The position numbers and the translations under genes are program-made. From assembly GCA_011109175.1 (NCBI GenBank), contig RDEW01000069.1, forward strand, positions 102,184 to 166,183: a DNA stretch of 64,000 bases. Direction: 5' to 3'. This document shows positions 3,961-62,559 of the stretch, one piece after another; the stretch's first letter is position 1; each line of letters starts with the position of its first letter. This DNA comes from Dicyema japonicum (taxonomy: Eukaryota; Animalia; Dicyemida). Under the pieces are notes generated by a model, which was given only the letters and a program-made list of their open reading frames with translations, was not told the origin of the DNA and made no database searches.

Positions 3961-4059
3961 AAATATCAAATTGCTTTTTTTACCAAAAAATACAACACCA
4001 ATTCTTCAACCATTGGACAATGGGATAATCAAAGCTTTTAAGTTAATTTTTTTTAATGT

Positions 4060-4970: not shown

Positions 4971-5029
4971 NNNNNNNNNNNNNNNNNNNNNNNNNNNNNN
5001 NNNNNNNNNNNNNNNNNNNNNNNNNNNNT
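4971..5029. other. Assembly gap (N run)
   Basis: Run of N. Confidence 1.
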
Positions 5030-5039
5030 AAATAAAATT

Positions 5040-8685: not shown

Positions 8686-8845
8686 TCAATTTTTGTTTGT
8701 TAATTCTTATTTTAGCTTCTTGCACTGTCAGTTATGTTAATAAAACTTCATTACGCATATAAATTTGTTCAGCCTGATTGTAACTTAATAATGAAAAATA
8801 TGAGTATCAATCTTATAGCTTATGTTGGCTATTCTGAAGGACTTG

Positions 8846-14389: not shown

Positions 14390-14421
14390 ATCGATAATTT
14401 TCATTCATTCATCGATAAATA

Positions 14422-14547
14422 ATGGCACGAACAAAACAAACTGCTAGAAAATCAACTGGAGCAAAAGTTCCAAGGACGAAAATGGTTCAAAAAGTGAGTA
14501 CCAAAGGATCTAAACGGGCGGCAGTTAAAGTTAGTAGCACAACACGT
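14422..14547 (+). CDS. Chimeric histone head: H3 codons 1-18 + TK + H2B codons 1-22, in frame with family-A ORF1
   Basis: [52 protein letters not shown], read directly from ORF 14422-14961. Confidence 0.93.
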
Positions 14548-15320
14548 TCCATAAGAAGTCTCGACGATTATCAGGACATCTCACGTGTGGTCTGTGACAC
14601 AGCGGCCCACGTGGTGGAAGGACTCTTCATAAATAAGCCCACTATTGGACTATATTTTAGAGGAGTCCGAGGTATCGAGAAGCTCAGGAGAGTCGTTCGC
14701 GACTCGATCCTTCTGTCCTTCAGAGTAAACATGGGGATCGATGGCAGGGCTGCTTTCCACACTGTAGCGGACATCCCCACACAGCTAGCGGTTGATCAAG
14801 CTGTGCCTGCACCGAGGAGGATGGAGGTTGAGAGCAAGACTCAGCCTCCTGTAATGGATCCAAGGACCGAGGAAAACATCCCAGCACAGCTAGCGTTGAA
14901 CAAGCTGTGCCTGGGACGAAAAGGATGGAGGTTGAGAGCAAGACTCAGCCTCTTGAAATGAATCAAGGACCGAGAACCGAGGGCAGGGCTGAATCCGTCA
15001 CACAGCCAGCGGTCCAACAGGCTGTGCCTGCCCTCGACGAAGGAAGACAAGAAGACCGTCTCCCGATGACTGTAGGCTGGACTACAGTAGGGAGAAAGAG
15101 GAAGTCTGCGGTTTCTGCCAAACCGCAGAACGTGCGTGATTCGGGTCCAGAAACCGCAAAGTGCCCTAAAAAGCATTTTGCAGGCTCGAATCAATCCAGA
15201 GCGCACGTGCCTAAAGAGAAGAACAAACAACAGGTATTCGGGGGACTAACTACACTAGTTCGGCTAGAGGTGCCGAAGATAGGAGTGGTTAAACTCCTAT
15301 GTGGCATAGGTACTCTGGCT

Positions 15321-24279: not shown

Positions 24280-24426
24280 CAAATTGTGCTTCCGGAAAAA
24301 AATTAGTTGCTCTCTCGTATTGTTGCAAAATTGCGTGTGCTTCCGCGAAAAATTTAAGCGTACGTTAGTATTAATACATCGCAAAAAAATCGATAATTTT
24401 CATTATCATTCATTCATCGATAAATA
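24280..24426 (+). promoter_or_regulatory. H3 promoter with two GTGCTTCCG(G/C)GAAAAA-type motifs, TATTAATA box and TCATT initiator-like repeats
   Basis: Motif recurs upstream of all four histone genes in every unit; function inferred. Confidence 0.55.
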
Positions 24427-27187: not shown

Positions 27188-27261
27188 ATGTCAGGACGTG
27201 GTAAAGGTGGAAAAGGAGGAAAGTCAGTGCAAAGCGATTTAAAAAGATCCTGATCGATAAC
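27188..27261 (+). CDS. H4 head (codons 1-25) fused to family-A ORF1
   Basis: ...GATAAC|GTAAGAAGTTTGGAC; in frame once the single G missing in TCAG(G)TGCA is restored. Confidence 0.85.
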
Positions 27262-28878
27262 GTAAGAAGTTTGGACGATTATGAGGACATCTCACGTGTG
27301 GTCTGCGACACAGCGGCCCACGTGGTACAAGGACTCTTCGAAAATAAGCCCTCTATTGGATTATATTTTAGAGGAGTCCGAGGAGTCGAGAAGCTCAGAA
27401 GGGTCGTTCGCGACTCGATCCTTCTGTCGTTCAGAGTCAATATGGGGATCGATGGCAGGGCTGCTTTCCACACTGCAGCGGACATCCCCACACAGCAAGC
27501 GGTTGATCAAGCTGTGCCTGCACCGAGGAGGATGGAGGTTGAGAGCAAGACTCAGCCTCTTGAAATGAATCAAGGACCGAGAACCGAGGGCAGGGCTGAA
27601 TCCGTCACACAGCCGCGGTCCAACAGGCTGTGCCTGCCCTCGACGAAGGAAGACAAGAGGACCGTCTCCCAATGACTGTAGGCTGGACTACAGTAGGGAG
27701 AAAGAGGAAGTCTGCGGTTTCTGCCAAACCGCAGAACGTGCGTGATTCGGGTCCAGAAACCGCAAAGTGCCCTAAAAAGCATTTTGCAGGCTCGAATCAA
27801 TCCAGAGCGCACGTGCCGAAAGAAAAGAAGAAAGAACAGGTATTCGGAGGACTAACTACACTAGTTCGGCTAGAGGTGCCGAAGATGGGAGTGGTTAAAC
27901 TCCTAAGTGGCATAGGTACTCTGGCTACCTATGCGAAAGGAAGGATCGTCAGACGAGGAGAATCCCACTTGTTGGTGGGATTCAGAAATGACGTGGACGC
28001 CTCAGCTTTTGAAGCTGAGGTGAATAAGAAGGTTCCTTTTGGGCCCGGGGCACATAACATGTCTCGGGTCATCCCCAAGGTACACGACTCGATTGTACTA
28101 GTCTTCGGAGTCCTCTGGACTTTGTTGATGAGGATGTACTCGAGTACATCAAAAAGGACTACCCCACGGCGCACAAGATCGAGCGCTTCAAGAGTGGGAG
28201 TCAGAGATTAAGGACTCTCAAGGTCTGGATCAGGTCCGGAGCAGAAGCTGAAAGGATCTGCCTTGAGAAGTTAAAGATAGGTTACTTTAGATTTGGTGTG
28301 GCCCGAGAGCGACCGGTAGCAATCCAGTGCTACAGATGCCAGGGATTCGGCCACACCAGCTCCCGCTGCACTTAATAAAGAGAAGTGCCTAAATTGCGGG
28401 GGTCCACATTCGCGGAAGGCTTGCCAAACAAGTGGCAAGTCTCTCAAGTGCGTGAACTGTGGCGCAAAAGGACACAGGGCGAGCCATACCAAGTGCCCCC
28501 TGTATCAGGAGGCGACGGAGAAGGTACCACAGGGGAGAAGGCAGGCGCCCTCCTCTGGAATGGTCAGTGATGTAGGCACTATCCATCGGATGGTGAGTAA
28601 CTATTGCAATGCCACTGGGGCTTCGCTCCAAACGGCACTTAGGGATATCGCGTTATCTCATAGGTTAAATAATGCGTCGAAGGGATGCTCAACATCGTCT
28701 TCGAAACAGGAGGACTTTAGAATATGACGAAGACTTTTATAAAACGAAGGAGGCACGGGGAAGACGAATGTGATGGCACGAAAACGCTGCCGCAAGGCGG
28801 TGAAAGGGCCTTTAGTTAGTTCTTCCCTAACTTAACATTTGTTTTTTTGCCTAATAAAGATTTTTCCGTTTTTCTTCC
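27262..28878 (+). mobile_element. LINE family A, ORF1-only short form, in H4
   Basis: ORF1 ends ..SKQEDFRI*, then the shared 3' UTR, AATAAA and TTCC tail; H4 restarts at 28879. Confidence 0.92.
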
Positions 28879-32148: not shown

Positions 32149-32442
32149 TTTTTACTTGATATAATAAAGAAAACTTGTTTTCTAACATTTTTTTCCTTAC
32201 ATAAAAATAGCCCACGTGTCATAATCTTAACAAAAGAACGTTTTTTATTAAATTTAACGTAATAAGAACGTTTTTTATTATTTTTAACGCTATTTAAAAA
32301 GTCCGTTTTAGTGTGTTTTCCAATTTTCACTTTAATATCGATTTGTGCTTCCGTGAAAAACTTTTAATATTATCGATTTGTGCTTCGGCGAAAAACTTTT
32401 TGCGTCGTCAATTTATAAACGCCAAATTTGGAGCGCAAAGCA

Positions 32443-32532
32443 ATGTCTGGACGTGGTAAAGGTGGAAAAGGAGGAAAGTCAGGTGCAAAGCGATTCAAAA
32501 AGATCCTGATCGATAACATTCAGGGATCACAA
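32443..32532 (+). CDS. H4 head (~30 codons) fused to family-A ORF1
   Basis: Junction ATCACAA|CACATTCCGTACGA as at 47666; in frame after restoring one G in CAGG(G)GATC. Confidence 0.85.
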
Positions 32533-34267
32533 CACATTCCGTACGAAATCTTGAGGATTATCAGGACATCTCACGTGTGGTCTGTGATACAGCGGCCCAC
32601 GTGGTACAAGGACTCTTCGAAAAATAAGCCCTCTATTGGATTATATTTTAGAGGAGTCCGAGGAGTAGAGAAGCTCAGAAGGGTCGTTCGCGACTCGATC
32701 CTTCTGTCGTTCAGAGTCAATATGGGGATCGATGGCAGGGCTGCTTTCCACACTGCAGCGGACATCCCACACAGCAAGCGGTTGATCAAGCTGTGCCTGC
32801 ACCAAGGAGGATGGAGGTTGAGAGCAAGACTCAGCCTCCTGTAATGGATCAAAGGACCGAGGAAAAACATCCCAGCAAAGCTAGCGGTGAACAAGCTGTG
32901 CCTGGGACAAGGAGGATGGAGGTTGAGGGCAAGACTCAGCCTCTTGAAATGAATCAAGGACGAGAACCGAGGGCAAGGGCTGAATCCGTCACACAGCCAA
33001 GCGGTCCAAACAGGCTGTGCCTGCCCTCGACGAAGTGCGACAAGAGGACCATCTCCCAATGACTGTAGGCTGGACTACAGTAGGGAGAAAGAGGAAGTCT
33101 GCGGTTTCTGCCAAACCGCAGAACGTGCGTGATTCGGGTCCAGAAAACCGCAAAGTGCCCTAAAAGCATTTTTGCAGGCTCGAATCAATCCAGAGCGCAC
33201 GTGCCGAAAGAAAAGAAGAAAGAACAGGTATTCGGAGGACTAACTACACTAGTTCGGCTAGAGGTGCCGAAGATGGGAGTGGTTAAACTCCTAAGTGGCA
33301 TAGGTACTCTGGCTACCTATGCGAAAGAAGGATCGTCAGACGAGGAGAATCCCACTTGTTGGTGGGATTCAGAAATGACGTGGACGCCTCAGCTTTTGAA
33401 GCTGAGGTGAATAAGAAGGTTCCTTTTGGGCCCGGGGCACATAACATGTCTCGGGTCATCCCCAAGGTACACGACTCGATTGTACTAGTCTTCCGGAGTC
33501 CCTCTGGACTTTGTTGATGAGGATGTACTCGGAGTACATCAAAAGGACTACCCCACGGCGCACAAGATCGAGCGCTTCAAGAGTGGAGTCAGAGACTAAG
33601 GACTCTCAAGGTCTGGATCAGGTCCGGAGCGGAAGCTGAGAGGATCTGCCTTGAGAAGTTTAAGATAGGTTACTTTAGATTTGGTGTGGCCCGAGAGCGA
33701 CCGGTAGCAATCCAGTGCTACAGATGCCAGGGATTCGGCCACACCAGCTCCCGCTGCACTTATAAAGAGAAGTGCCTAAATTGCGGGGTCCACATTCGCG
33801 AAGGCTTGCCAAACAAGTGGCAAGTCTCTTCAAGTGCGTGAACTGTGGCGCAGAAGGACACAGGGCGAGCCATACCAAGTGCCCCCCTGTATCAGGAGGC
33901 GACGGAGAAGGTACCACAGGGGAGAAGGCAGGCGCCCTCCTCTGGAATGGCCAGTGATGTAGGCACTATCCATCGGATGGTGAGTAACTATTGCAATGCC
34001 ACTGGGGCTTCGCTCCAAACGGCACTTAGGGATATCGCGTTTATCTCATAGGTTAAATAATGCGTCGAAGGGATGCTCAACAATCGTCTTCGAAACAGGA
34101 GGACTTTAGAATATGACGAAGACTTTTATAAAACGAAGGAGGCACGGGGAAGACGAATGTGATGGCACGAAACGCTGCCGCAAGGCGGTGAAAGGGCCTT
34201 TAGTTAGTTCTTCCCTGATTACTTAACATTTGTTTTTTGCCTAATAAAGATTTTTCCGTTCCGATCC
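32533..34267 (+). mobile_element. LINE family A, ORF1-only short form, in H4
   Basis: Same structure as 27262-28878; tail TTCCGTTCCGATCC. Confidence 0.92.
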
Positions 34268-36999: not shown

Positions 37000-37161
37000 T
37001 TTATTGAAAATTTTGAATTTTTTCGTACTTATGTTTTTAAATTGTGCTTCCGGAAAAAACTTTTAAATTAGCATAAGAAAATCAATACTTTCTAAAGTTT
37101 ATTCTGGAAGCACAATTTGAAAACATAAGTACGAAAAAATTCAAAATTTTTGATTTAGACT

Positions 37162-37529
37162 ATGGTTCAAAAAGTTAGCACAAAAGGATCTAAAAGGCTG
37201 CAGTTAAAGTTAGTAGCACAACACGTGCCTTACGAAAAAAGAAAAAGCGATCCCAAAACTATCATTTGTACATTCTGAGGATTTTGAAATCTGTCCACAC
37301 TGATTTGGGGATGTCAAAGAAAGCTATGATGGCTATGGACAGCTTTACTTTTGACATTTACGAAAAAATCAAGAACGAAGCTTGCAATCTAGTTCAGCAT
37401 AATAGCAAAGCTACTATCACATCAAGAGAAATTCAAACAGCAGTACGCTTGATTTTGCCTGGAGAATTGGCAAAGCATGCTATTACCGAAGGGGCAAAGG
37501 CGGTCACCAAGTATACCAATACTAAGTGA
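37162..37529 (+). CDS. H2B: Histone H2B (1-bp indel near codon 12)
   Basis: Matches intact copies. Confidence 0.92.
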
Positions 37530-37822
37530 TTTTTACTTGATATAATAAAGAAAACTTGTTTTCTAACCATTTTTTTCCTTACATAAAAATAGCCCACGTG
37601 TCATAATCTTAACAAAAGAATGTTTTTTATTAATTTTAACGCAATAAGAACGTTTTTTATTATTTTAACGCTATTTAAAAAGTCCGTTTTAGTGTGTTTT
37701 CCAATTTTCACTTTAATATCGATTTGTGCTTCCGTGAAAAACTTTTAATATTATCGATTTGTGCTTCGGCGAAAAATTTTTGCGTCGTCAATTTATAAAC
37801 GCCAAATTTGGAGCGCAAAGCA

Positions 37823-38131
37823 ATGTCTGGACGTGGTAAAGGTGGAAAAGGAGGAAAGTCAGGTGCAAAGCGATTCAAAAAGATCCTGATCGATAACATT
37901 CAGGGGATCACAAAGCCTGCAATTAGGAGACTGTGTCGTAGAGGAGGTGTGAGAAGGATCTCAGGCAAAATTTATGAGGAGACAAGATGTGTCCTCAGGA
38001 TCTTTATTGAGAGAACTATAAGAGATTGCATTTCCTATTGTGAACACGCTAAAAGAAAAACTGTGATTGCTATGGATGTGGTCTATGCCTTGAAGAGACA
38101 AGGGAGAACAATATATGGATTTGGTGGATGA
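37823..38131 (+). CDS. H4: Histone H4
   Basis: Intact ORF. Confidence 0.98.
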
Positions 38132-38460
38132 CTTTTTTTAATAAAAAAATAAATTTTTATCTATATTAAATTCTGAGATATAAATTAAGTCGTTTTAGGG
38201 TTACAAGAAGCTTTCTATAAATAGTGTTTTTTATGAATTCTAAATACACAGTGATAATTTTAAAATTTTGTAAAATAGCTTTTTTCTACTTTAATGTGGT
38301 AAAATTTTGCTTAAAATAATGCTTTGATAATTTTAAAAAAAATTGTGTTTTGATAATTTTCCAAATTGTGCTTCCGGAAAAAAATTACTTGCTCTCTCGT
38401 ATTGTTGCAAAATTGCGTGTGCTTCCGCGAAAAATTTAAGCGTACGTTAGTATTAATACA

Positions 38461-38541
38461 AAATTTTTGATTTAGACTATGGTTCAAAAAGTTAGCACTA
38501 AAGGATCTAAACGGGCTGCAGTTAAAGTTAGTAGCACAACA
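38461..38541 (+). other. Ectopic H2B 5' UTR plus first 21 codons placed just after the H3 TATA-like box
   Basis: ...TATTAATACA|AAATTTTTGATTTAGACTATGGTTCAAAAAG matches H2B at 37143-37220. Confidence 0.92.
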
Positions 38542-40302
38542 AGTTCCGTAAGAAGTTTGGACGATTACCAGGACATCTCACGTGTGGTCTGTGATACAGC
38601 GGCCCACGTGGTAAATGGACTCTTCGAAAATAAGCCCTCTATTGGATTATATTTTAGAGGAGTCCGAGGAGTCGAGAAGCTCAGAAGGGTCGTTCGCGAC
38701 TCGATCCTTCTGTCGTTCAGAGTCAATATGGGGATCGATGGCAGGGCTGCTTTCCACGCTGCAGCGGACATCCCCACACAGCAAGCGGTTGATCAAGCTG
38801 TGCCTGCACCGAGGAGGATGGAGGTTGAGAGCAAGACTCAGCCTCCTATAATGGATCAAGGGACATGGAAAAAGACCAGGCCTACTTCATACACATCAGA
38901 GGACATCCCCACACAGCAAGCGGTTGAACAAGCTGTGCCTGCACCGAGGAGGATGGAGGTTGAGAGCAAGACTCAGCCTCTTGAAATGAATCAAGGACCG
39001 AGAACCGAGGGCAGGGCTGAATCCGTCACACAGCCAGCGGTCCAACAGGCTGTGCCTGCCCTCGACGAAGTGCGACAAGAGGACCATCTCCCAATGACTG
39101 TAGGCTGGACTACAGTAGGGAGAAAGAGGAAGTCTGCGGTTTCTGCCAAACCGCAGAACGTGCGTGATTCGGGTCCAGAAACCGCAAAGTGCCCTAAAAA
39201 GCATTTTGCAGGCTCGAATCAATCCAGAGCGCACGTGCCGAAAGAAAAGAAGAAAGAACAGGTATTCGGAGGACTAACTACACTAGTTCGGCTAGAGGTG
39301 CCGAAGATGGGAGTGGTTAAACTCCTAAGTGGCATAGGTACACTGGCTACCTATGCGAAAGGAAGGATCGTCAGACGAGGAGAATCCCACTTGTTGGTGG
39401 GATTCAGAAATGACGTGGACGCCTCAGCTTTTGAAGCTGAGGTGAATAAGAAGGTTCCTTTTGGGCCCGGGGCACATAACATGTCTCGGGTCATCCCCAA
39501 GGTACACGACTCGATTGTACTAGTCTTCGGAGTCCCTCTGGACTTTGTTGATGAGGATGTACTCGAGTACATCAAAAAGGACTACCCACGGCGCACAAGA
39601 TCGAGCGCTTCAAGAGTGGGAGTCAGAGACTAAGGACTCTCAAGGTCTGGATCAGGTCCGGAGCAGAAGCTGAAAGGATCTGCCTTGAGAAGTTAAAGAT
39701 AGGTTACTTTAGATTTGGTGTGGCCCGAGAGCGACCGGTAGCAATCCAGTGCTACAGATGCCAGGGATTCGGCCACACCAGCTCCCGCTGCACTTATAAA
39801 GAGAAGTGCCTAAATTGCGGGGGTCCACATTCGCGGAAGACTTGCCAAACAAGTGGCAAGTCTCTCAAGTGCGTGAACTGTGGCGCGGAGGGACACAGGG
39901 CGAGCCATACCAAGTGCCCCCTGTATCAGGAGGCGACGGAGAAGGTACCACAGGGGAGAAGGCAGGCGCCCTCCTCTGGAGTGGTCAGTGATGTAGGCAC
40001 TATCCATCGGATGGTGAGTAACTATTGCAATGCCACTGGGGCTTCGCTCCAAACGGCACTTAGGGATATAGCGTTATCTCATAGGTTAAATAATGCGTCG
40101 AAGGGATGCTCAACATCGTCTTCGGAACAGGAGGACTTTAGAATATGACGAAGACTTTTATAAAACGAAGGAGGCACGGGGAAGACGAATGTGATGGCAC
40201 GAAAACGCTGCCGCAAGGCGGTGAAAGGGCCTTTAGTTAGTTCTTCCCTGATTACTTAACATTTGTTTTTTTGCCTAATAAAGATTTTTCCGTTCCGTTC
40301 CG
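38542..40302 (+). mobile_element. LINE family A, ORF1-only short form, H2B-headed
   Basis: ORF 38479-39633 fused in frame; tail TTCCGTTCCGTTCCG. Confidence 0.92.
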
Positions 40303-40309
40303 TTAGACT

Positions 40310-41938
40310 ATGGTTCAAAAAGTTAGCACAAAAGGATCTAAACGGGCTGCAGTTAAAGTTAGTAGCACAAAAAGTTCCGTAAGAAGTTTGGACGATTACC
40401 AGGACATCTCACGTGTGGTCTGTGATACAGCGGCCCACGTGGTAAATGGACTCTTCGAAAATAAGCCCTCTATTGGATTATATTTTAGAGGAGTCCGAGG
40501 AGTCGAGAAGCTCAGAAGGGTCGTTCGCGACTCGATCCTTCTGTCCTTCCGAATAAACATGGGGATCGATGGCAGGGCTGCTTTCCACGCTGCAGCGGAC
40601 ATCCCCACACAGCAAGCGGTTGATCAAGCTGTGCCTGCACCGAGGAGGATGGAGGTTGAGAGCAAGACTCAGCCTCCTATAATGGATCAAGGGAAATGGA
40701 AAAAGACCAGGCCTACTTCATACACATCAGAGGACATCCCCGCACAGCTAGCGGTTGAACAAGCTGTGCCTGGGACGAGGAGGATGGAGGTTGAGAGCAA
40801 GACTCAGCCTCTTGAAATGAATCAAGGACCGAGAACAGAGGGCAGGGTTGAATCCGTCACACAGCCAGCGGTCCAACAGGCTGTGCCTGCCCTCGACGAA
40901 GGAAAACAAGAGGACCGTCTCCCGATGACTGTAGGCTGGACTACAGTAGGGAGAAAGAGGAAGTCTGCGGTTTCTGCCAAACCGCAGAACGTGCGTGATT
41001 CGGGTCCAGAAACCGCAAAGTGCCCTAAAAAGCATTTTGCAGGCTCGAATCAATCCAGAGCGCACGTGCCGAAAGAAAAGAAGAAAGAACAGGTATTCGG
41101 AGGGCTAACTACACTAGTTCGGCTAGAGGTGCCGAAGATGGGAGTGGTTAAACTCCTAAGTGGCATAAGTAGTCTGGCTACCTATGCGAAAGGAAGGGTC
41201 GTCAGACGAGGAGAATCCCACTTGTTGGTGGGATTCAGAAATGACGTGGACGCCTCAGCTTTTGAAGCTGAGGTGAATAAGAAGGTTCCTTTGGGCCCGG
41301 GGCACATAACATGTCTCGGGGTCATCCCCAAGGTACACGACTCGATTGTACTAGTCTTCGGAGTCCCTCTGGACTTTGTTGATGAGGATGTACTCGAGTA
41401 CATCAAAAAGGACTACCCCACGGCGCACAAGATCGAGCGCTTCAAGAGTGGGAGTCAGAGACTAAGGACTCTCAAGGTCTGGATCAGGTCCGGAGCAGAA
41501 GCTGAGAGGATCTGCCTTGAGAAGTTAAAGATAGGTTACTTTAGATTTGGTGTGGCCCGAGAGCGACCGGTAGCAATCCAGTGCTACAGATGCCAGGGAT
41601 TCGGCCACACCAGCTCCCGCTGCACTTATAAAGAGAAGTGCCTAAATTGCGGGGGTCCACATTCACGGAAGGCCTGTCAATCCAGAGTCAGGTCTCTCAA
41701 GTGCGTGAACTGTGGCTTGGAGGGACACAGGGCGAGCCATACCAAGTGCCCCCTGTATCAGGAGGCGACGGAGAAGGTACCACAGGGGAGAAGGCAGGCG
41801 CCCTCCTCTGGAGTGGTCAGTGATGTAAGCGCTGTCCACCGCGTGGTAAGTCGATACTGTAGCAGCACAGGTTCAACGTTCCCTAATGCGCTTAGGGACA
41901 TTGCGCTCTGCGATAGGAAGGTAAGTGCGGCGAAGTGA
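40310..41938 (+). CDS. H2B-head::ORF1 fusion protein (542 aa, gag-like, three CCHC zinc knuckles)
   Basis: [32 protein letters not shown]...CYRCQGFGHTSSRC, CLNCGGPHSRKAC, CVNCGLEGHRASHTKC. Confidence 0.93.
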   Translation: MVQKVSTKGSKRAAVKVSSTKSSVRSLDDYQDISRVVCDTAAHVVNGLFENKPSIGLYFRGVRGVEKLRRVVRDSILLSFRINMGIDGRAAFHAAADIPTQQAVDQAVPAPRRMEVESKTQPPIMDQGKWKKTRPTSYTSEDIPAQLAVEQAVPGTRRMEVESKTQPLEMNQGPRTEGRVESVTQPAVQQAVPALDEGKQEDRLPMTVGWTTVGRKRKSAVSAKPQNVRDSGPETAKCPKKHFAGSNQSRAHVPKEKKKEQVFGGLTTLVRLEVPKMGVVKLLSGISSLATYAKGRVVRRGESHLLVGFRNDVDASAFEAEVNKKVPLGPGHITCLGVIPKVHDSIVLVFGVPLDFVDEDVLEYIKKDYPTAHKIERFKSGSQRLRTLKVWIRSGAEAERICLEKLKIGYFRFGVARERPVAIQCYRCQGFGHTSSRCTYKEKCLNCGGPHSRKACQSRVRSLKCVNCGLEGHRASHTKCPLYQEATEKVPQGRRQAPSSGVVSDVSAVHRVVSRYCSSTGSTFPNALRDIALCDRKVSAAK

Positions 41939-44519
41939 TGTTACGCATCATTTCAGTTAATGTTAGGTCCCTCCGGAGAAGAAGGAAGGCCATCGAGGAT
42001 CTTCTGGACTCTTTGGAGGTGGACATCTTGGTCCTTAACGAGACCAAGAGTAAGGATACGGCTGCTGCAGGCTTTAAAGGCTATACTAGTTGTCATCTCT
42101 TGTGGAATGACACACATAGAGGTTCGGGCACTAGTATCTATTGGAGGACGAGTCTAGCAGCAGTCGTCCAAGGTATTGCAAATTGTCCTCATTGCGAGCT
42201 AATATTATTACGAATCAGGTTATCTGGCTTTAGCGTTGTTATAGGGGCAATGTATGCCAAGCAGTTGTGGTTGTGTAAGGACCACATTAAAACTGTATTT
42301 GACATTCATCCCCATTGCGTTATTTTTGGTGATCTGAATGCTAAGCATTCAGATTTTGGCTGTTTTGTTAATAATAGGGCTGGATCAGCACTCCGGGAAT
42401 TAGCTTGGAATCTTGGGCTCTCAGTCACTACATCGACGGACCCCAATCACAAAGATACACGAGGAGGAGAGGACTTCTTGGGTATGGCCGTAGCCTCCCC
42501 TTCATTAATTGGTATGCTCTCTGTACCTCGTGTTCTTAGGGACATCGGAAGCGATCACCGTCCCCTACTCACTGAGCTTCACGAACCTGTTCGACCTCAG
42601 GCCCCAATTGGCTATGACTTGGGCTCTGGCACTTGGGATAACCTGGAGTCGTTCATGGATAGAAAACTCCCTTCTCTCAAAGGGCAAGTTTGTAGTGAAG
42701 CGGACGTGGAGGAATTGGATGCCACCCTGGGTGGTATCCTCGAGGAATACATGCGGACTAACTTCCGGTTACGTCCGCAAGGTGGAGGCTCCGCACGAAT
42801 TCCAGGCCTGATTTTAAGTAAGATAACACTTAGAAAGAGGTACCTGCGGTTCAAAGCGAGGAGCACGTATGAAGAGAACCGGATCTTCTACCAGAAGAAG
42901 GTAAACACCTTACGAAGGGAAATCCGGAAGGCGCTTGTTGACTATCAGAGCAACAAATGGAGGAGGGCCTGCGAGAGGGTGAACCCCGCATGGCCGGACT
43001 TCTGGAGTCAGCTGAAGCGCCTGTCGGGCAGAGGGGAAGAGTCATCTGCGCGTACCCTGTGTCGTGCGGACGGTTCTAAAACCTCTGACCCGACTGAAAT
43101 AGCGAGCATCTTTGCAGGTAGCTTTAGGGCAGTTACTGCAGTTCGACCAGAGAACTTTGTCGAGTTAACAGCTCGACAAAGTATAGAGGACGTCATCTCT
43201 GCGGAGAGACGGAAGTTGAGCCACTCTCGGGAGATCCCGAAGGTGGCATGCATCACCGAGGAGGAGGTCCGGGCCGCGATAAGTAAATCGAAGAACAACG
43301 CACCGGGCCAAGACAAGATCCCCATGGCCCTTTTCAAGAAAGGACCTGGAAGTCTCGTGAACACCTTGGTAAGATTGTACAACGGTAGTACAGGTTGGGT
43401 TACGTTCCTAGGCGTTGGAAGGAAGCGGAACTGGTTTTTGTAAGGAAACCAGGAAAACCTCCTGAAGACCCTAGTAGCTACCGCCCTATAAGCTTGTTAC
43501 CTGCCGTTGCTAAAATCTTAGAGAGAGTGATACACCAGAGGTTAACCCAGGAATGCATAATAAAAGACACCCTCTCGGACCTTCAGATGGGATTCCGTGA
43601 GGGGCGTTCCTGTGGGGACTGCCTCTGGAGGTTGAGCTCTCAGATTCGTGAAAGGAGCAAGAAGCAATGCACAGCCGCGTTGTTCCTGGATGTGGAGAGG
43701 GCGTTCGACTCGGTCTGGCATGACGGCCTCCGTTGCGCCCTCGCAGAAGGAGGAATATCTCTGGAGCTAAGGAGCTGGTTATCAAGCTTCTTAGAGGATC
43801 GGATGAACTATGTAAGGCATAAAGGTTGCCGATCTAGTTTGTTTAGATCTAACCGGGGAGTTCCACAAGGGTCGGTTTTGAGCCCCACCCTTTTCAACGT
43901 TTACATGTCTACACTTCCCCACCCAGCCAATGTGAGGACGGAGATGGCTATCTATGCGGACGACATAGTACTCTGGGATCACTCGTGGAAACCAGATGTA
44001 GCGTGTCGGAGGATTCAAGTAGCTGTCAATGAAATCATACGCTGGTGTGGGAGCAGAGGACTTAGGCTGAGACCTGAGAAATGTAAGTTATTAGTTTTTG
44101 GCCGCCCTAAGCGGTCTAATAATTTAATACCTAGAGTAACCATCTATGGGGTACCTATAGAGGTTACTGGGCGGACGAGCTACCTTGGAGTGACATTCAA
44201 CTCCAAGTGTAGTTTCCAGGAGCACACCGCCCTCGTTAAGAGGCGGGCTGTGCAAAGATTAGGAGCGTTGAGGGCTTTTCAGCTGAGTCGCGATGCCTGG
44301 GCCAAAGTGTTCAACGCCATGGTGCTGCCTATGCTCACCTATGGTGCGCACTCCTGGTATTGTAGTGAGGAACGCGAAAAGTGCCTCACCAACTTGAGGA
44401 AGGTTCGGCGGCGGGCAATACGGTATTCTATAGGATTGTCTTATAGAGCGCCGCTGCCCGAAAGAGGATATCCGATTTCAGGACCCGAGGAAGTGATTAA
44501 AAAGATCTTAAAAAATTAA
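41938..44519 (+). CDS. ORF2: AP endonuclease + reverse transcriptase (Jockey/I-group-like; no RNase H seen); 1-bp indels near 43390 and 44475
   Basis: ISVNVRSL, LVLNETK, GDLNAKH, IGSDHRP; YRPISLL, QMGFREGRSC, DVERAFDSVWH, GVPQGSVLSPTLFN, YADD, YLGVTF. Starts by a TGATG overlap with the ORF1 stop. Confidence 0.95.
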
Positions 44520-44557
44520 AGAAGGAGGCACGGGGAAGACGAATGGATGCACGAAAA

Positions 44558-44575
44558 CGCTGCCGCAAGGCGGTG
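44558..44575 (+). other. 3' UTR hairpin of family A (CGCTGCC-GCAA-GGCGGTG, GNRA loop)
   Basis: 7-bp stem with two G-U pairs; conserved in nearly all family-A 3' ends. Confidence 0.6.
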
Positions 44576-44675
44576 AAAGGGCCTTAGTTAGTTCTTCCCT
44601 ATTACTTAACATTTGTTTTTTGCCTAATAAAGATTTTTCCTTCCTTTCAATCGATAATTTTCATTTTCATTAATA

Positions 44676-45086
44676 ATGGCACGAACAAAACAAACTGCTA
44701 GAAAATCAACTGGAGCAAAAGTTCCAAGGAAACAGCTTTCTGCTAAATCTGCACGCAAGTCAGTTTCTCAATTGGGTGGTGTAAAGAAACCACATCGCTT
44801 TCGTCCTGGTGTCGTGGCAATGAGGGAGATCAGAAGATATCAAAAGAGTACTGACCTTCTATTGCGAAAGACACCGTTCCAAAGGGTTGTTAGAGAAGCA
44901 GCACAATTTATGAAGACAGATTTACGTTTCCAATCATCGGCCATTGTTGCTCTTCAGGAGGCTGCAGAGACTTATTTGGTCGGGATTTTTGAGGATAGTA
45001 ATTTGTGTGCAATACATGGAAAACGAGTAACAATAATGCCACAGGATATGCACCTAGCAAGGAGAATTCGTGGTGAAAAAACATAA
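44676..45086 (+). CDS. H3: Histone H3 (intact, downstream of element)
   Basis: 136-aa ORF. Confidence 0.97.
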
Positions 45087-46358
45087 CTTTTCGATAAATC
45101 AAATAAATATAATTTGTCTCTTTTTTTTAAATTAACCTAATCCCGACAAAATTTAGGAAAAATAAAAATCCAATCCTTATAGCCTAATTGATAATGTTTT
45201 TCGAGACGCAATGTCGTTTTAAATTGTTAATTCACGGGAATTTCTAATCATACGCAGTTTCTATCAACTAGCTAAAAATAGCCTATATAAACCCAACTTC
45301 AATGTAACAAACTAACCAAATAAATCTCAAGTACAAAAATAAGACAAATTTTTAATTTTGACACTGTTTAAAAAACAAAAAAACTATATCATTTTCTTTT
45401 AATGTAACAAACTAACCATATAAAATCTCCCTTTAATTACAAAAATAAGACAAATTTTTAATTTTGACACTGTTAAATAACAATTTGAATATTATATATA
45501 AAATTAAATTAATCGCTGTCGAAAAATTGGGGTCAAAAATCCAGGTTTTTGCGGCTGATTGATCTCAAACCAAGTTCATTCCACGCGTCTTGCTTTTAGG
45601 CGTTAAAATATGAAATCAGATTAAAAATTGGACGCACGTTTGCGGAGATTTGATAATTGATTATTTTTTAGTTTTTATAAATTAAATTTGTCTATTATTC
45701 TTGTTTATGTAAGCCTTGTTAACCTTTAACTAAATTAATTTATTTTTTTGATTACCTAAATGCTACATTCTAAGATAGTTCTAGATATTGACTTAGTCGG
45801 CTAGGCTTACAGTTGGTTAGTAATAATGTAACTTTTTTCAAAATAACTTTTGTAAGTGACTGATTATTGTATTTAAGAGACTGAATCGGTATATAGAGGG
45901 GAGCAACTTTCTACGACCTAATCAATTTGGATTCCGTCCGGGAAGATCATGTGGAGATTGTATCCACTCACTAAACTACGAAATTATAAATACATTGGAG
46001 AAGAAATTAATTTGTCTAATTAAATTTGTCTACTATTCTTGTTTATGTAAGTCTTGTTATCCTTTAACTAAATTAATTTTTTTTTGATTATCCAATTGCT
46101 ACATTCCAGATAGTTCTTGACTTGTCAGCTAGGGTTACAGTTGGTTAGTAATAATGTAACTTTTTGCAAGATAACTTTTGTAAGTAATTAAGTTTCAATT
46201 TTATTAATAGGGTTTTACTCCTTTGGAGTAATTTTCCGATAGATATCTTGACAAAATAAAGGCAGATGTCTTATTACTTAGGGATCAAATGATTTCTGGC
46301 TAGCAAGTACTATAGTTGATAAAAGTCAATTAAAGTAAAGGTTTATTTAATAAAATTG

Positions 46359-47285: not shown

Positions 47286-47575
47286 TTTTTACTTGATATA
47301 ATAAAGAAAACTTGTTTTCTAACATTTTTCTTACATAAAAATAGCTCACGTGTCATAGTCTTAACAAAAGAATGTTTTTTTATTATTTTAGCGCAATAAG
47401 AACGTTTTTTATTATTTTTAACGCTATTTAAAAAGTCCGTTTTAGTGTGTTTTCCAATTTTCACTTTAATATCGATTTGTGCTTCCGTGAAAAACTTTTA
47501 ATATTATCGATTTGTGCTTCGGCGAAAAATTTTTGCGTCGTCAATTTATAAACGCCAAATTTGGAGCGCAAAGCA

Positions 47576-47666
47576 ATGTCAGGACGTGGTAAAGGTGGAA
47601 AAGGAGGAAAGTCAGGTGCAAAGCGATTCAAAAAGATCCTGATCGATAACATTCAGGGGATCACAA
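47576..47666 (+). CDS. H4 head (30 codons) fused in frame to family-A ORF1
   Basis: ...[24 protein letters not shown] in ORF 47561-47854. Confidence 0.92.
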
Positions 47667-49404
47667 CACATTCCGTACGAAATCTTGAGGATTATGAGGA
47701 CATCTCACGTGTGGTCTGCGACACAGCGGCCCACGTGGTACAAGGACTCTTCGAAAATAAGCCCTCTATTGGATTATATTTTAGAGGAGTCCGAGGAGTA
47801 GAGAAGCTCAGAAGGGTCGTTTCGCGACTCGATCCTTCTGTCATTCAGAGTTAATATGGGGATCGATGGCAGGGCTGCTTTCCACACTGCAGCGGACATC
47901 CCCACACAGCAAGCGGTTGATCAAGCTGTGCCTGCACCGAGGAGGAGGATGGAGGTTGAGAGCAAGACTCAGCCTCCTGTAATGGATCCAAGGACCGAGG
48001 AAAACATCCCAGCACAGCTAGCGGTTGAACAAGCTGTGCCTGGGACGAGGAGGATGGATGTTGAGAGCAAGACTCAGCCTCTTGAAAAGAATCAAGGACC
48101 GAGAACCGAGGGCAGGGCTGAATCCGTCACACAACCAGCGGTCCAACAGGCTGTGCCTGCCCTCGACGAAGTGCGACAAGAGGACCATCTCCCGATGACT
48201 GTAGGCTGGACTACAGTAGGGAGAAAGAGGAAGTCTGCGGTTTCTGCCAAACCGCAGAACGTGCGTGATTCGGGTCCAGAAACCGCAAAGTGCCCTAAAA
48301 GCATTTTTGCAGGCTCGAATCAATCCAGAGCGCACGTGCCGAAAGAAAAGAAGAAAGAACAGGTATTCGGAGGACTAACTACACTAGTTCGGCTAGAGGT
48401 GCCGAAGATGGGAGTGGTTAAACTCCTAAGTGGCATAGGTACACTGGCTACCTATGCGAAAGAAGGATCGTCAGACGAGGAGAATCCCACTTGTTGGTGG
48501 GATTCAGAAATGACGTGGACGCCTCAGCTTTTGAAGCTGAGGTGAATAAGAAGGTTCCTTTTGGGCCCGGGGCACATAACATGTCTCGGGTCATCCCCAA
48601 GGTACACGACTCGATTGTACTAGTCTTCGGAGTCCCTCTGGACTTTGTTGATGAGGATGTACTCGAGTACATCAAAAAGGACTACCCCACGGCGCACAAG
48701 ATCGAGCGCTTCAAGAGTGGGAGTCAGAGACTAAGGACTCTCAAGGTCTGGATCAGGTCCGGAGCGGAAGCTGAGAGGATCTGCCTTGAGAAGTTAAAGA
48801 TAGGTTACTTTAGATTTGGTGTGGCCCGAGAGCGACCGGTAGCAATCCAGTGCTACAGATGCCAGGGATTCGGCCACACCAGCTCCCGCTGCACTTATAA
48901 AGAGAAGTGCCTAAATTGCGGGGGTCCACATTCGCGGAAGGCTTGCCAAACAAGTGGCAAGTCTCTCAAATGCGTGAACTGTGGCGCAGAAGGACACAGG
49001 GCGAGCCATACCAAGTGCCCCCTGTATCAGGAGGCGACGGAGAAGGTACCACAGGGGAGAAGGCAGGCGCCCTCCTCTGGAATGGTCAGTGATGTAGGCA
49101 CTATCCATCGGATGGTGAGTAACTATTGCAATGCCACTGGGGCTTCGCTCCAAACGGCACTTAGGGATATCGCGTTATCTCATAGGTTAAATAATGCGTC
49201 GAAGGGATGCTCAACATCGTCTTCGAAACAGGAGGACTTTAGAATATGACGAAGACTTTTATAAAACGAAGGAGGCACGGGGAAGACGAATGTGATGGCA
49301 CGAAAAACGCTGCGCAAGGCGGTGAAAGGGCCTTTAGTTAGTTCTTCCCTGATTACTTAACATTTGTTTTTTGCCTAATAAAGATTTTTCCATTCCATTT
49401 TTCC
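47667..49404 (+). mobile_element. LINE family A, ORF1-only short form, in H4
   Basis: Tail TTCCATTCCATTTTTCC joins GCGAAAAA, 55 nt upstream of the H4 ATG. Confidence 0.92.
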
Positions 49405-53383: not shown

Positions 53384-53899
53384 NNNNNNNNNNNNNNNNN
53401 NNNNNNNNNNNNNNNNNNNNNNNNNNNNNNNNNNNNNNNNNNNNNNNNNNNNNNNNNNNNNNNNNNNNNNNNNNNNNNNNNNNNNNNNNNNNNNNNNNNN
53501 NNNNNNNNNNNNNNNNNNNNNNNNNNNNNNNNNNNNNNNNNNNNNNNNNNNNNNNNNNNNNNNNNNNNNNNNNNNNNNNNNNNNNNNNNNNNNNNNNNNN
53601 NNNNNNNNNNNNNNNNNNNNNNNNNNNNNNNNNNNNNNNNNNNNNNNNNNNNNNNNNNNNNNNNNNNNNNNNNNNNNNNNNNNNNNNNNNNNNNNNNNNN
53701 NNNNNNNNNNNNNNNNNNNNNNNNNNNNNNNNNNNNNNNNNNNNNNNNNNNNNNNNNNNNNNNNNNNNNNNNNNNNNNNNNNNNNNNNNNNNNNNNNNNN
53801 NNNNNNNNNNNNNNNNNNNNNNNNNNNNNNNNNNNNNNNNNNNNNNNNNNNNNNNNNNNNNNNNNNNNNNNNNNNNNNNNNNNNNNNNNNNNNNNNNNN
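53384..53899. other. Assembly gap (N run)
   Basis: Run of N. Confidence 1.
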
Positions 53900-57639: not shown

Positions 57640-60514
57640 GTGGCTTGAGGGACACAGGGCGAGCCATACCAAGTGCCCCCTGTATCAGGAGGCGACGGAG
57701 AAGGTACCACAGGGGAGAAGGCAGGCGCCCTCCTCTGGAGTGGTCAGTGATGTAAGCGCTGTCCACCGCGTGGTAAGTCGATACTGTAGCAGCACAGGTT
57801 CAACGTTCCCTAATGCGCTTAGGGACATTGCGCTCTGCGATAGGAAGGTAAGTGCGGCGAAGTGATGTTACGCATCATTTCAGTTAATGTTAGGTCCCTC
57901 CGGAGAAGAAGGAAGGCCATCGAGGATCTTCTGGACTCTTTGGAGGTGGACATCTTGGTCCTTAACGAGACCAAGAGTAAGGATACGGCTGCTGCAGGCT
58001 TTAAAGGCTATACTAGTTGTCATCTCTTGTGGAATGACACACATAGAGGTTCGGGCACTAGTATCTATTGGAGGACGAGTCTAGCAGCAGTCGTCCAAGG
58101 TATTTCAAATTGTCCTCATTGCGAGTTAATATTATTACGAATCAGATTATCTAGCTTTAGCGTTGTTATAGGGGCAATGTATGCCAAGCAGTTGTGGTTG
58201 TGTAAGGACCACATTAAAACTGTATTTGACATTCATCCCCATTGCGTTATTTTTGGTGATCTGAATGCTAAGCATTCAGATTTTGGCTGTTTTGTTAATA
58301 ATAGGGCTGGATCAGCACTCCGGGAATTAGCTTGGAATCTTGGGCTCTCAGTCACTACATCGACGGACCCCAATCACAAAGATACACGAGGAGGAGAGGA
58401 CTTCTTGGGTATGGCCGTAGCCTCCCCTTCATTAATTGGTATGCTCTCTGTACCTCGTGTTCTTAGGGACATCGGAAGCGATCACCGTCCCCTACTCACC
58501 GAGCTTCACGAACCTGTTCGACCTCAGGCCCCAATTGGCTATGACTTGGGCTCTGGCACTTGGGATAACCTGGAGTCGTTCATGGATAGAAAACTCCCTT
58601 CTCTCAAAGGGCAAGTTTGTAGTGAAGCGGACGTGGAGGAATTGGATGCCACCCTGGGTGGTATCCTCGAGGAATACATGCGGACTAACTTCCGGTTACG
58701 TCCGCAGGTGGAGGCTCCGCACGAATTCCAGGCCTGATTTTAAGTAAGATAACACTTAGAAAGAGGTACCTGCGGTTCAAAGCGAGGAGCACGTATGAAG
58801 AGAACCGGATCTTCTACCAGAAGAAGGTAAACACCTTACGAAGGGAAATCCGGAAGGCGCTCGTCGACTATCAGAGCAACAAATGGAGGAGGGCCTGCGA
58901 GAGGGTGAACCCCGCATGGCCGGACTTCTGGAGTCAGCTGAAGCGCCTGTCGGGCAGAGGGGAAGAGTCATCTGCGCGTACCCTGTGTCGTGCGGACGGT
59001 TCTAAAACCTCTGACCCGACTGAAATAGCGAGCATCTTTGCAGGTAGCTTTAGGGCAGTTACTGCAGTTCGACCAGAGAACTTTGTCGAGTTAACAGCTC
59101 GACAAAGTATAGAGGACGTCATCTCTACGGAGAGACGGAAGTTGAGCCACTCTCGGGGATCCCGAAGGTGGCATGCATCACCGAGGAGGAGGTCCGGGCC
59201 GCGATAAGTAAATCGAAGAACAACGCACCGGGCCAAGACAAGATCCCCATGGCCCTTTTCAAGAAAGGACCTGGAAGTCTCGTGAACACCTTGGTAAGAT
59301 TGTACAACGGTAGCTACAGGTTGGGTTACGTTCCTAGGCGTTGGAAGGAAGCGGAACTGGTTTTTGTAAGGAAACCAGGAAAACCTCCTGAAGACCCTAG
59401 TAGCTACCGCCCTATAAGCTTGTTACCTGCCGTTGCTAAAATCTTAGAGAGAGTGATACACCAGAGGTTAACCCAGGAATGCATAATAAAAGACACCCTC
59501 TCGGACCTTCAGATGGGATTCCGTGAGGGGCGTTCCTGTGGGGACTGCCTTGGAGGTTGAGCTCTCAGATTCGTGAAAGGAGTAAAAAGCAATGCACAGC
59601 CGCGTTGTTCCTGGATGTGGAGAGGGCGTTCGACTCGGTCTGGCATGACGGCCTCCGTTGCGCCCTCGCAGAAGGAGGAATATCTCTGGAACTAAGGAGC
59701 TGGTTATCAAGCTTCTTAGAGGATCGGATGAACTACGTAAGGCATAAAGGTTGCCGATCTAGTTTGTTTAGATCTAACCGGGGAGTTCCACAAGGGTCGG
59801 TTCTGAGCCCCACCCTTTTTAACATATACATGTCTACACTCCCCCACCCGGCCAATGTGAGGACGGAGATGGCTGTCTATGCGGACGACATAGTACTCTG
59901 GGATCACTCGTGGAAACCAGATGTAGCGTGTCGGAGGATTCAAGTAGCTGTCAATGAAATCATACGCTGGTGTGGGAGCAGAGGACTCAGGCTGAGACCT
60001 GAGAAATGCAAGTTGTTAGTTTTTGGCCGCCCTAAGCGGTCTAATAATTTAATACCTAGAGTAACCATCTATGGGGTACCTATAGAGGTTACTGGGCGGA
60101 CGAGCTACCTTGGAGTGACATTCAACTCCAAGTGTAGTTTCCAGGAGCACACCGCCCTCGTTAAGAGGCGGGCTGTGCAAAGATTAGGAGCGTTGAGGGC
60201 TTTTCAGCTGAGTCGCGATGCCTGGGCCAAAGTGTTCAACGCCATGGTGCTGCCTATGCTCACTTATGGTGCGCACTCCTGGTATTGCAGTGAGGAACGC
60301 GAAAAGTGCCTCACCAACTTGAGGAAGTTTCGGCGGCGGGCAATACGGAATTCCCTAGGATTGTGTTATAGAGCGCCGCTGCCCGAAAGAGGATATCCGG
60401 ATTTTAAGGACCCGGAGGAAGTTATTAAAAAGATCTTGAAAATAAATTAAAGAAGGAGGCACGGGGAAGACGAAAGTGATGGCACGAAAACGCTGCCGCA
60501 AGGCGGTGAAAGGG
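57640..60514 (+). mobile_element. LINE family A copy outside the array (5'-truncated, lacks the last ~70 nt and tail)
   Basis: Near-identical to 41710-44580; ORF2 57865-60450 with 1-bp indels. Confidence 0.93.
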
Positions 60515-60840: not shown

Positions 60841-61092
60841 AAGCATTAAAGGAATTGACGAATATGAGGATGTCTCACGCGTGGTTCAGTGACTCTTCTC
60901 AAATAAACCTTCTATTGGAATTTATTTTAGAGATGTCAAAGGCTTGGAAAAACTCAGGCTGGTCGTTCGCGACTCGGTCCTCCTGGCTTTCCGAGTGAAT
61001 ATGGGGATCGATGGCAGGGCTGCTTTTCACACGGGAGCGGACATTTCCCCACAGTCAGCGGTTGAACATGCTGTGCCTGCTACGAGGAGGAA
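60841..61092 (+). mobile_element. Diverged relative of the family-A ORF1 5' region
   Basis: SIKGIDEYEDVSRVV and [22 protein letters not shown] homology with many substitutions. Confidence 0.75.
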
Positions 61093-62559
61093 GACATTTG
61101 AGACATAAGTTTTCAATGGGATAACAGACCGAATTCAAGAATATTCATATTTCAGAATTGTTAAGAATTTATAATTAATTTAATGATACAATCAAACTGT
61201 CTAAAAAAATTCAAAGAAAAAGAACATCCAGGAACCAGTAGCCATAACTCCATAGAATAATTTTATGGCCATCAATATCTTGGATGTCAAAAATGTAATC
61301 ATCATATACAAAAAAGGCTAACGTTATGAAATATGGAATTCAATATTAACTGAAAGTGTTAAAAAACCGATGTCTAGAGTATTATTAAGAACTTCAAAAA
61401 AAACACACATATCTGAAGAAAATTTATTCAATTATTTTTCTATTTCAGGTAAAAATTTAGTTGATGAGAATCAGTAAGTAAATATTATAATTGATGAAAT
61501 CCTCAGACACAGAAAAAAAATTTTCAGGAATTTATGTAACCAAAAGGATGATTTTTCAAATGCAAGTTAATGAATCTAAATACGCGTTTTAAATGATTAT
61601 GGGACGAATCCATGGCTAAAGTTGAACAGATTTGAATCTCCATATGAAGAGATAAGTAAAACTACTCAATTTTTGTCAAACATCCAATCGAGGTTTATTT
61701 AATTTTTTATAACAGATTAAGGCACGTTCAGGTTAGGTTAAAATAGTCAACATGAGTCGAGTCAATTAAATATAGCTTTAAAAAAATAAATTCTTTGATT
61801 CAAAATCAATTAATATTGATTGAATAACAGGAGGTGACATGTCTTTTGAAAGGTGAAATGTTACCAGCACTAGATGGGTAACCCGGGCAAGACGCGGCAG
61901 ACTTTGTAGCTGATTACAATCAAAGGTTATCTCCTTTATAAAAAGTATTTATTATATATATTTTTAGTACAGAAAAATCGTCGATAATAATTTGTATAAA
62001 ATCAAAAAGGTAGCCAGGATAAAGATGAAATAGGTTATGCAACGAAACCAATGCTCAAACAATAAAAATCGATAGTGAAGATTCAATATAGTTCGAATAA
62101 AATGAAGTAAATGTTATTTTTCTCTTCGAATTATATATTTTATTGGATTATTGATATAAACCAGGTGAAAAAAAGCTCAAAACTGCGGACAAGCAGACAA
62201 TTTGAGATCGATTGCATTCGACAGAGGAGATTAACTCTAAATATTGTTTTGAGTGTTCCCCATGCGGTGCTATAAACATGTTGGCTTTCGTGAAAGTACC
62301 TTAATAATAATAATAAATTGAATTACTGAAAATATTCTTGACATGATGCAGATCATAACAATTCGAACAAACAGACTAAAAAGAAATATTAACAAAAGAA
62401 TATTAATAGGGGGAAATCAAATAGTAAAAAATAATCCATATTCATAGGTTAACAAAATATAAAATATATATTAGACATTTTGATAACAACCTTCAACACT
62501 ATTTGATGAATCCAATTATATAATGTTTGACAATACAACAGACGAATATTGTAAAATGG

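Follow-up and report, generated by a model that had tools for sequence, protein, structure and literature searches.

A LINE family in the 5' ends of dicyemid histone genes and its probable use of borrowed histone starts

A LINE family within a histone gene array

We analyzed a 64,000-nucleotide (nt) stretch of the Dicyema japonicum genome (assembly GCA_011109175.1, contig RDEW01000069.1, positions 102,184 to 166,183 of the forward strand; hereafter the window), in which copies of a long interspersed nuclear element (LINE) lie in the 5' ends of histone genes. A tandem histone repeat spans 13.8 to 54.2 kb of the window, with units of ∼5.2 to 5.5 kb, each in the order H3 (+), H2A (−), H2B (+), and H4 (+). 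These histones are divergent in sequence, and the DNA is ∼61% A+T. The D. japonicum genome paper reports 36.7% GC and 49% repeats; the word "histone" is absent from it, and LINEs appear there solely as multiple copies of open reading frame (ORF) 2. The near full-length LINE at 40303 (copy 40310; copies are designated by window position) carries an ORF1 that opens with histone codons. It is described below with the short element in front of it.

40303..44648, +, near full-length element, directly behind the tail of the short element and followed by H3 from ∼−30
40303..40375, +, H2B-derived leader (7 nt) and head (22 codons, ATG at 40310)
40310..41938, +, ORF1, 542 codons, intact in this copy
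40379..40558, +, 60 element codons preceding the first internal Met (40559)
41582..41749, +, three CCHC zinc knuckles of ORF1 (C-C-H-C pattern search, residues 425 to 480)
41936..41940, +, UGAUG, the ORF1 stop overlapping the ORF2 start
41938..44519, +, ORF2, APE endonuclease and reverse transcriptase (RT)
44520..44648, +, 3' untranslated region (UTR) and tail, with AATAAA at 44626 and imperfect TTCCN repeats, joined to H3 at ∼−30
38459..40302, +, short ORF1-only element (copy 38479): H2B leader (∼20 nt) and head, ORF1, a few ORF2 codons, and 3' UTR with tail

In Pfam searches, ORF2 matched Exo_endo_phos (1.4e-13), Exo_endo_phos_2 (9e-10), and RVT_1 (1.4e-40). ORF1 matched zf-CCHC_6 at 1.7e-6, above the cut-off, and zf-CCHC more weakly, below it; protein searches with ORF1 returned only distant gag-like proteins aligning to residues 250 to 500. 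Judged by its domains, the element is an APE-type LINE family with two ORFs and a gag-like ORF1. Its copies bear the footprints of target-primed reverse transcription: 5' ends vary (H2B −20, −7, and −4/−6; inside the H2B remnant described below; at GTAAGAAGT; and at nt 41712 in ORF1), no long terminal repeat is present, and all copies share one 3' end, a 3' UTR with AATAAA, ∼5 T, and then imperfect TTCCG/TTCCA/TTCCT repeats. Against PDB, the RT matched R2 and L1 ORF2 chains at 1e-10 to 1e-13, which is uninformative for clade. Named matches came mostly from insects and bdelloid rotifers, the best being "mobile element jockey" of Papilio xuthus (36% identity), which is only a hint of a jockey-type placement.

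Full-length copies are 98.4 to 99.4% identical to one another, which implies recent activity. Most histone units hold a 1.8-kb relative limited to ORF1: its ORF1 and 3' UTR are those of the longer element, with the last ∼100 nt diverged and ORF2 represented by a few codons. Since its copies carry three different heads (two H4 junctions and the H2B head), this subfamily may be a nonautonomous partner mobilized in trans.

Histone heads, reading frames, and selection on ORF1

In all copies, ORF1 homology has a common start at S(V/I)RSLDDY, with no ATG, as the original prediction had described. What precedes it is histone DNA. In copy 40310, the first 22 codons of the ORF together with the 7-nt leader are H2B DNA, the head (61 to 66 nt) and leader being 97 to 100% identical to the H2B genes at 31780 and 37162; across the elements, heads are 90 to 100% identical to neighboring histone genes. 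An in-frame TAG at 40304 to 40306, two codons ahead of the ATG at 40310, bounds the start of this ORF on its upstream side. The remaining copies and the head junctions are as follows.

14395..14961, +, stacked head H3(−30..+54)::H2B(−4/−6..+66)::ORF1, in frame; the tail of another element precedes it (14322 to 14394)
27188..28877, +, short element beginning at GTAAGAAGT, fused behind an H4 head that runs to +75 and lacks one G; H4 from −9 after the tail
32443..34267, +, H4 head (to +91), CACAA overlap, H2B-head remnant, and ORF1; head one G short; H4 from −9 after the tail
47576..49400, +, H4+91 junction as in 32443, in frame as written; tail joins H4 at ∼−58 within the promoter motif TTCCGCGAAAAA
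53020..53383, +, GTAACGAAG joined behind an H4 head that runs to +91; not in frame in the assembly; enters a gap of N
57640..60514, +, copy truncated 5' and 3', outside the histone units
60846..61095, +, old diverged ORF1 5' fragment, 81% nt identity, with no histone head
27262-28877, 32534-34267, 38459-40302, and 47667-49400, members of the ORF1-only subfamily
Junction H2B+66::ORF1, in copies 14482, 38479, and 40310
Junction H3+54::H2B leader, in 14422
Junction H4+75::GTAAGAAGT, in 27188
Junction H4+91 via a CACAA overlap to the last H2B-head codons, in 32443 and 47576
Junction H4+91::GTAACGAAG, in 53020

As assembled, the head is in frame with ORF1 at 14422 (18 amino acids of H3, then TK and the H2B head), 38479, 40310, and 47576, exactly where in-frame heads had been predicted. 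At 27188 and 32443, the H4 head is one G short relative to every other H4 copy; the losses postulated for these two copies were thus confirmed, and across the junctions proper the phase is kept. In the assembly, copy 53020 is out of frame, with an offset of 115 nt. Because junctions recur (for example, 32443 and 47576 share one 5' junction), the seven copies represent only five independent junction events at the DNA level in the window. Four of these five are in phase, in line with the claim that different junction sequences keep the frame. When two events from a distant relative (described below) were added, 6 of 7 independent junctions were in frame against an expectation of 1/3 (binomial P = 0.007, or P = 0.045 with the 27188 event counted as out of frame). 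These events are few, and lineages losing the frame may not have spread, which is the claim itself.

Purifying selection was assessed on the 60 codons that precede the internal Met in seven copies, with p values for an excess of synonymous changes. In the ORF1 frame, we counted 18 synonymous and 18 nonsynonymous changes (omega, ∼0.32; p = 0.0007), compared with 7 and 26 in frame +1 (omega, 1.1; p = 0.65) and 5 and 28 in frame +2 (omega, 1.9; p = 0.95). No other part of ORF1 is as strongly constrained. The fragment at 60846 to 61095, at 81% nt identity, keeps the same peptide with conservative changes. Because purifying selection is confined to the ORF1 frame and the peptide persists in this old fragment, the codons before the internal Met appear to be translated in active lineages. 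That Met lies far inside ORF1 (codon 84, 40559), as had been noted, but 61 codons after the S of the conserved start rather than the ∼55 originally given. The element has no 5' UTR or ATG of its own ahead of the constrained codons, which agrees with the proposal that it lacks its own start; the start must then lie upstream, in the histone head.

These results bear on a quite unlikely explanation, namely, that the copies are passive debris: dead elements spread by unequal crossing-over, with heads that are duplicated target, frames set by chance or shared descent, and an internal Met that active elements use. The frameshifts in most copies as assembled, the junction common to 32443 and 47576, the good context of the internal Met, and the small tally are all in keeping with such debris. 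It is contradicted by frame-specific selection upstream of the internal Met and by the peptide kept in the old fragment, by heads at noncognate sites and in a relative that was ascertained separately and lies on another contig, by the 98 to 99% identity of full-length copies, which marks them as recently active, and by the presence of the junctions and ORF1 in RNA-like sequencing runs.

The run evidence consists of assembler contigs. In run X1, depth was flat over gene and spacer, which makes the run DNA-like. In run X4, depth was 4,000 to 9,000 over H4, 0 to 43 over the spacer, 60 to 800 over ORF1, and 6 to 70 over ORF2; "RNA-like" for X4 and X7 is inferred from this relation of gene to spacer depth. 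(Run X7, labeled "DNA?," had 10,000 to 50,000 over H4 and a spacer depth of 1,000 falling to 0, and behaves like RNA or cDNA.) One X4 contig, at a depth of 133, runs from H4 +91 across the junction letters to ORF1, supporting the existence of H4::ORF1 chimeric transcripts. In another, the H2B leader (−7) is preceded by TACGGGGAT, a context absent from the window. The runs also bear on two frameshifts. ORF1 of copy 38479 is frameshifted near 39584, and an X4 ORF1 contig has an additional C at that point; ORF2 of copy 40310 is without one C at 43388, which is present in copy 57640 and in about half of the X1 depth.

Misassembly of the repetitive array could in principle have produced the histone::ORF1 junctions, and the window does contain an N gap (53384 to 53899) and many single-base indels in its repeats. 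We consider such an artifact extremely improbable because the junctions recur across runs, H4+75 in X1 and in X6 (which has another organism label and study) and H4+91 in X4; a related fusion is also present in an unrelated assembly.

Travelling heads, insertion sites, and a distant relative

The H2B head was found at three sites that are not H2B genes, each time with a different leader. In the copy at 38459, a leader of ∼20 nt lies at H3 −44, with the H3 TATA-like box 28 nt ahead of it; at 40303, 7 nt of leader start directly behind the tail of the previous element; and at 14476, a leader of 4 to 6 nt starts inside H3 codon 19. The proposal of a histone promoter at each copy therefore does not hold for copy 40310, where only the 7 nt of H2B leader intervene behind the preceding tail; by its position, the head of this copy is inherited rather than gained on site. 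Likewise, the H4+91 junction was made by an H2B-headed template, because a remnant of the H2B head remains there. Both native H2B variants, leader included, occur among the element-borne heads, which suggests either repeated residence in H2B genes or gene conversion by neighbors. The presence of heads with leaders at new sites implies that the templates for transposition included RNAs whose 5' ends lay in a histone leader, and RNAs beginning in the H2B leader thus appear to have been reverse-transcribed and inserted repeatedly.

The same heads could be read as the outcome of one event, in which the H2B leader and head were captured once, by 5' transduction or a template switch onto H2B mRNA, and now serve as the element's own 5' end and ATG with an internal promoter, the H3 and H4 heads being roleless by-products of insertion. 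A single junction common to all three H2B-headed copies fits this account, as does the H2B remnant at H4+91, which would make the H2B head ancestral in the family; copy 40310 has no upstream histone promoter, and an internal promoter at the extreme 5' end is usual in jockey- and I-type LINEs. However, the carried leader is variable and, at 4 to 20 nt, leaves little room for a promoter; the H4 ATG remains in phase with ORF1 in H4-headed copies whose H2B ATG is gone; the element heads include both native H2B variants, leader included; and the distant relative has H3 and H4 pieces rather than H2B, so head exchange recurs. We therefore regard a single capture as unlikely.

Tails join H4 at −9 (28878 and 34268, with different tail repeats) and at ∼−58 inside TTCCGCGAAAAA (49401), H3 at ∼−30 (14395 and 44649), and H2B at −7 (40303), and X1 contigs add joins at H3 −81, in the same promoter motif, and another at H4 −9. 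Together, these sites give at least five different 3' junctions, none of them more than ∼80 nt ahead of a histone ATG. Element 5' ends are joined in sequence coding for the N-terminal tail, at H3 +54, H2B +66, and H4 +75 or +91. The H3 and H4 genes have a common promoter motif, GTGCTTCCGCGAAAAA; a related motif, GTGCTTCCAGAA, lies between H2A and H2B.

38419-38434, 47518-47535, and 24335-24350, motif GTGCTTC(C/G)GCGAAAAA, upstream of H3 and H4, and the related GTGCTTCCAGAA

The core of the motif, TTCCG, equals the tail repeat of the element, and two insertion junctions fall exactly at the motif. This resemblance suggests base pairing between the 3' end of the element RNA and the target when synthesis is primed.

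Behind every H4-headed element, H4 starts anew as a complete ORF from −9 or −58, such that duplications of the H4 leader and head span 84, 100, or ∼149 nt. A private T variant is common to both copies of the H4 leader and head in the 27188 unit. A single staggered cut, with a target duplication of 84 to 150 bp, was considered as the whole explanation and rejected as inadequate, because the H4+91 5' junction is paired with two 3' junctions, H4 −9 and H4 −58. Reinsertion of an H4-headed RNA whose 5' end is completed by homology to the target, as has been proposed for R2 co-transcripts, would fit these pairings. A junction could first have formed when the top strand broke 75 to 100 nt downstream of the initial nick, or when synthesis switched to histone mRNA as its template.

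An unrelated second LINE family (20185 to 22956, −) occupies a similar site. Its tail (AATAAA and TTTGA repeats) abuts H2A −12 and its 5' end joins H2A at ∼−56, with ∼44 nt of target lost. It has no histone head, and the listed ORF begins at a spacer ATG (22984) between H2A and H2B.

Outside the window, the best RT match was a gene model filed under Octopus sinensis (LOC115231655; 54% identity). We examined 20,777 nt (region L001) of the 201-kb contig VCDQ01012037.1 of assembly GCA_006345805.1, filed as Octopus sinensis. The region holds a full element, with ORF2 42 to 55% and ORF1 31 to 53% identical to those of the window element and a homologous 3' UTR. At L001:6227-7315, H3 residues 1 to 28 are followed by ALRRLCRSGGV, an H4 piece with a dicyemid-specific Cys, and then by ORF1, in 362 codons without a stop. 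The H3 head has five dicyemid-specific residues and differs from the window H3 genes at synonymous sites. This copy was ascertained by its RT and not by its head, and it contributes the two further in-phase junctions of the tally. It lies outside any histone gene, and tblastn found no further histone matches in the 20.8 kb. In its flank, a DYRK-like kinase gene has a 24-nt GT..AG intron (L001:19140-19163) between HCDLKP and ENILL; tiny introns are a hallmark of dicyemids. Given this intron and the dicyemid-specific residues in the H3 and H4 pieces of the head, the contig is most likely DNA of a dicyemid parasite inside a host assembly, in which case LOC115231655 would be a fragment of a parasite LINE; transfer of the element to the octopus is a less likely alternative. 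Other histone-headed ORF1 proteins were found neither by word-based searches with ORF1 and the headed L001 ORF nor by an exhaustive phmmer search of ORF1 against 1.84 billion representatives with a histone-motif scan, all in libraries that do not contain the proteins of this genome.

Taking the anatomy, the travelling heads, the excess of in-phase junctions, and the selection on codons before the internal Met together, we think it fairly probable that this LINE family lives in the 5' ends of histone genes, is expressed through a borrowed histone start, and copies the head onward. An insertion whose tail joins within ∼80 nt upstream of a histone ATG and whose 5' end falls inside the N-terminal-tail coding sequence would put the histone promoter, leader, ATG, and 18 to 30 tail codons ahead of ORF1, and a second copy of leader and head behind the tail would restore the full histone ORF. 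Transcripts would begin where those of the histone gene do and be translated from its ATG, yielding a histone-tail::ORF1 protein. The chimeric RNA would also be the template for transposition, hence the copying of heads to new sites. The H2B head would have become the standing 5' end of the window family, with new heads (H3 and H4) stacking on it or replacing it and frame-keeping lineages persisting. It is plausible that the element has no promoter of its own and depends on those of its hosts. The nuclear-import or chromatin-binding signal that had been suggested for the basic tail is speculative: because three different tails (H2B, H3, and H4) serve equally, the ATG and promoter seem to matter more than any specific function of the tail.

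Several observations weigh against a borrowed start. Junction 53020 is out of frame and two copies have a 1-nt gap in the head, and at least one frameshift as assembled is present in every ORF1-only copy and in every ORF2 of the window. The context of the internal Met (AACATGG) is as good as that of the H2B ATG. Array copies are not fully independent, since gene conversion and unequal crossing-over occur, and element-borne H2B heads match the H2B variant of their neighbors. The truncated and old copies at 57640 to 60514 and 60846 to 61095 lie outside histone genes, so that target specificity may be less than strict. Finally, the run contigs have neither direction nor molecule ends, and the kinds of run are guessed.

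S-phase expression, which had also been proposed, has no basis here. AATAAA lies 10 to 25 nt past the stops of all four core histone genes (38135-38160, 45087-45115, 32149-32175, and 46330-46358), and Rfam gave no histone 3' stem-loop, either at gathering score over the full window or at E <= 1 in 37000 to 45600, the stretch with H2B, H4, and H3; the histone mRNAs are for these reasons probably polyadenylated. Rfam searches of the same scope (gathering score, full window; E <= 1, 37000 to 45600) likewise found no HDV (hepatitis delta virus)-like ribozyme able to cut off the head. Such a ribozyme at the junction was rejected on this ground and because heads stay attached in retrotransposed copies.

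In X1, the summed word depth of H4 and spacer (37823 to 38134) was 10 to 40 times that of the element (38500 to 43700). Most histone units in the genome are thus probably without an insertion, and the window may be an insertion-rich edge of the array. Two further features lie among the insertions: a ∼1.47-kb element with ∼280-bp terminal inverted repeats (15320 to 16794), nested inside LINE copy 14482, and a related 266-bp palindromic piece (14056 to 14321) in the 3' UTR of the preceding LINE copy.

Extending the argument to the relative, we lean slightly toward a broader proposal: LINEs of this dicyemid lineage would be obligate translational hitchhikers that have no promoter, leader, or start codon of their own and gain all of these by in-phase insertion into the first 20 to 30 histone codons, rebuild the host ORF, and carry, swap, and stack heads in at least two lineages (42 to 55% ORF2 identity).

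Comparison with known systems

To our knowledge, the multicopy targets of site-specific LINEs are noncoding: ribosomal DNA (rDNA), small nuclear RNA (snRNA), spliced-leader, and tRNA genes, microsatellites, telomeres, and other transposons. Full-text literature searches returned no paper on histone-targeting LINEs or on a LINE whose ORF1 begins within a host gene.

One parallel is with R1 and R2, rDNA-specific LINEs found in arthropods and other animals, which also use a tandem multicopy host gene, with inserted units beside intact ones and a host promoter; R2 has no detectable promoter of its own and is co-transcribed with its host gene (PMC12203849). Their target, however, is a noncoding RNA polymerase I gene, whereas that of the window element is a protein-coding RNA polymerase II (Pol II) gene. 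An HDV-like ribozyme releases the R2 RNA, whose translation does not depend on a cap, and R2 has a restriction-like endonuclease and one ORF. In contrast, the window element has an APE-type endonuclease, two ORFs, and no ribozyme match, and it would keep the host piece on its RNA as a start codon and N-terminal peptide. Upstream homology of a co-transcript to target DNA can reportedly complete the 5' junction.

SLACS, CZAR, and CRE of trypanosomatids and NeSL-1 of nematodes resemble the window element in inserting near the 5' end of a tandem Pol II gene, that for spliced-leader RNA. SLACS is said to be driven by the host gene promoter, with host-derived nucleotides at the 5' end of its RNA. 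These elements differ in that their host gene is noncoding, which yields no translational fusion, and in their restriction-like endonuclease and clade.

An exceptionally long target duplication is shared with R9 of bdelloid rotifers, in which it is reportedly 126 bp; the histone duplication in the window is ∼84 to 150 nt. The R9 duplication is called "exceptionally long" in a title listed in PMC12203849. R9 belongs to the R2 group and targets 28S rDNA, whereas the window duplication may reflect staggered cuts or reinsertion of a headed RNA.

Host sequence at the 5' end is likewise carried to new loci in L1 and SVA, through 5' transduction and template-switch chimeras, and in SINEU, to which heads can be added repeatedly (PMC4494074). 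Those heads are snRNA or arbitrary flanks and have no coding role; in contrast, the window heads are protein coding, are in frame, and would replace a missing start. The overlap of ORF1 stop and ORF2 start within five bases (UGAUG) resembles that of SART1, of the R1 clade, which reportedly couples the two through UAAUG.

A protein-coding Pol II target, a host piece that is retained on the RNA and would serve as start codon and N-terminal peptide, and heads that are exchanged and stacked set the window element apart from these systems. If the borrowed start is real, it would constitute a new route of retrotransposon expression, with promoter, leader, start codon, and basic N-terminal peptide supplied by in-frame histone fusion; a new means of limiting damage to the host, since each insertion would be followed by a rebuilt histone ORF; and a case in nature of a LINE that repeatedly captures exon sequence of its host in frame.

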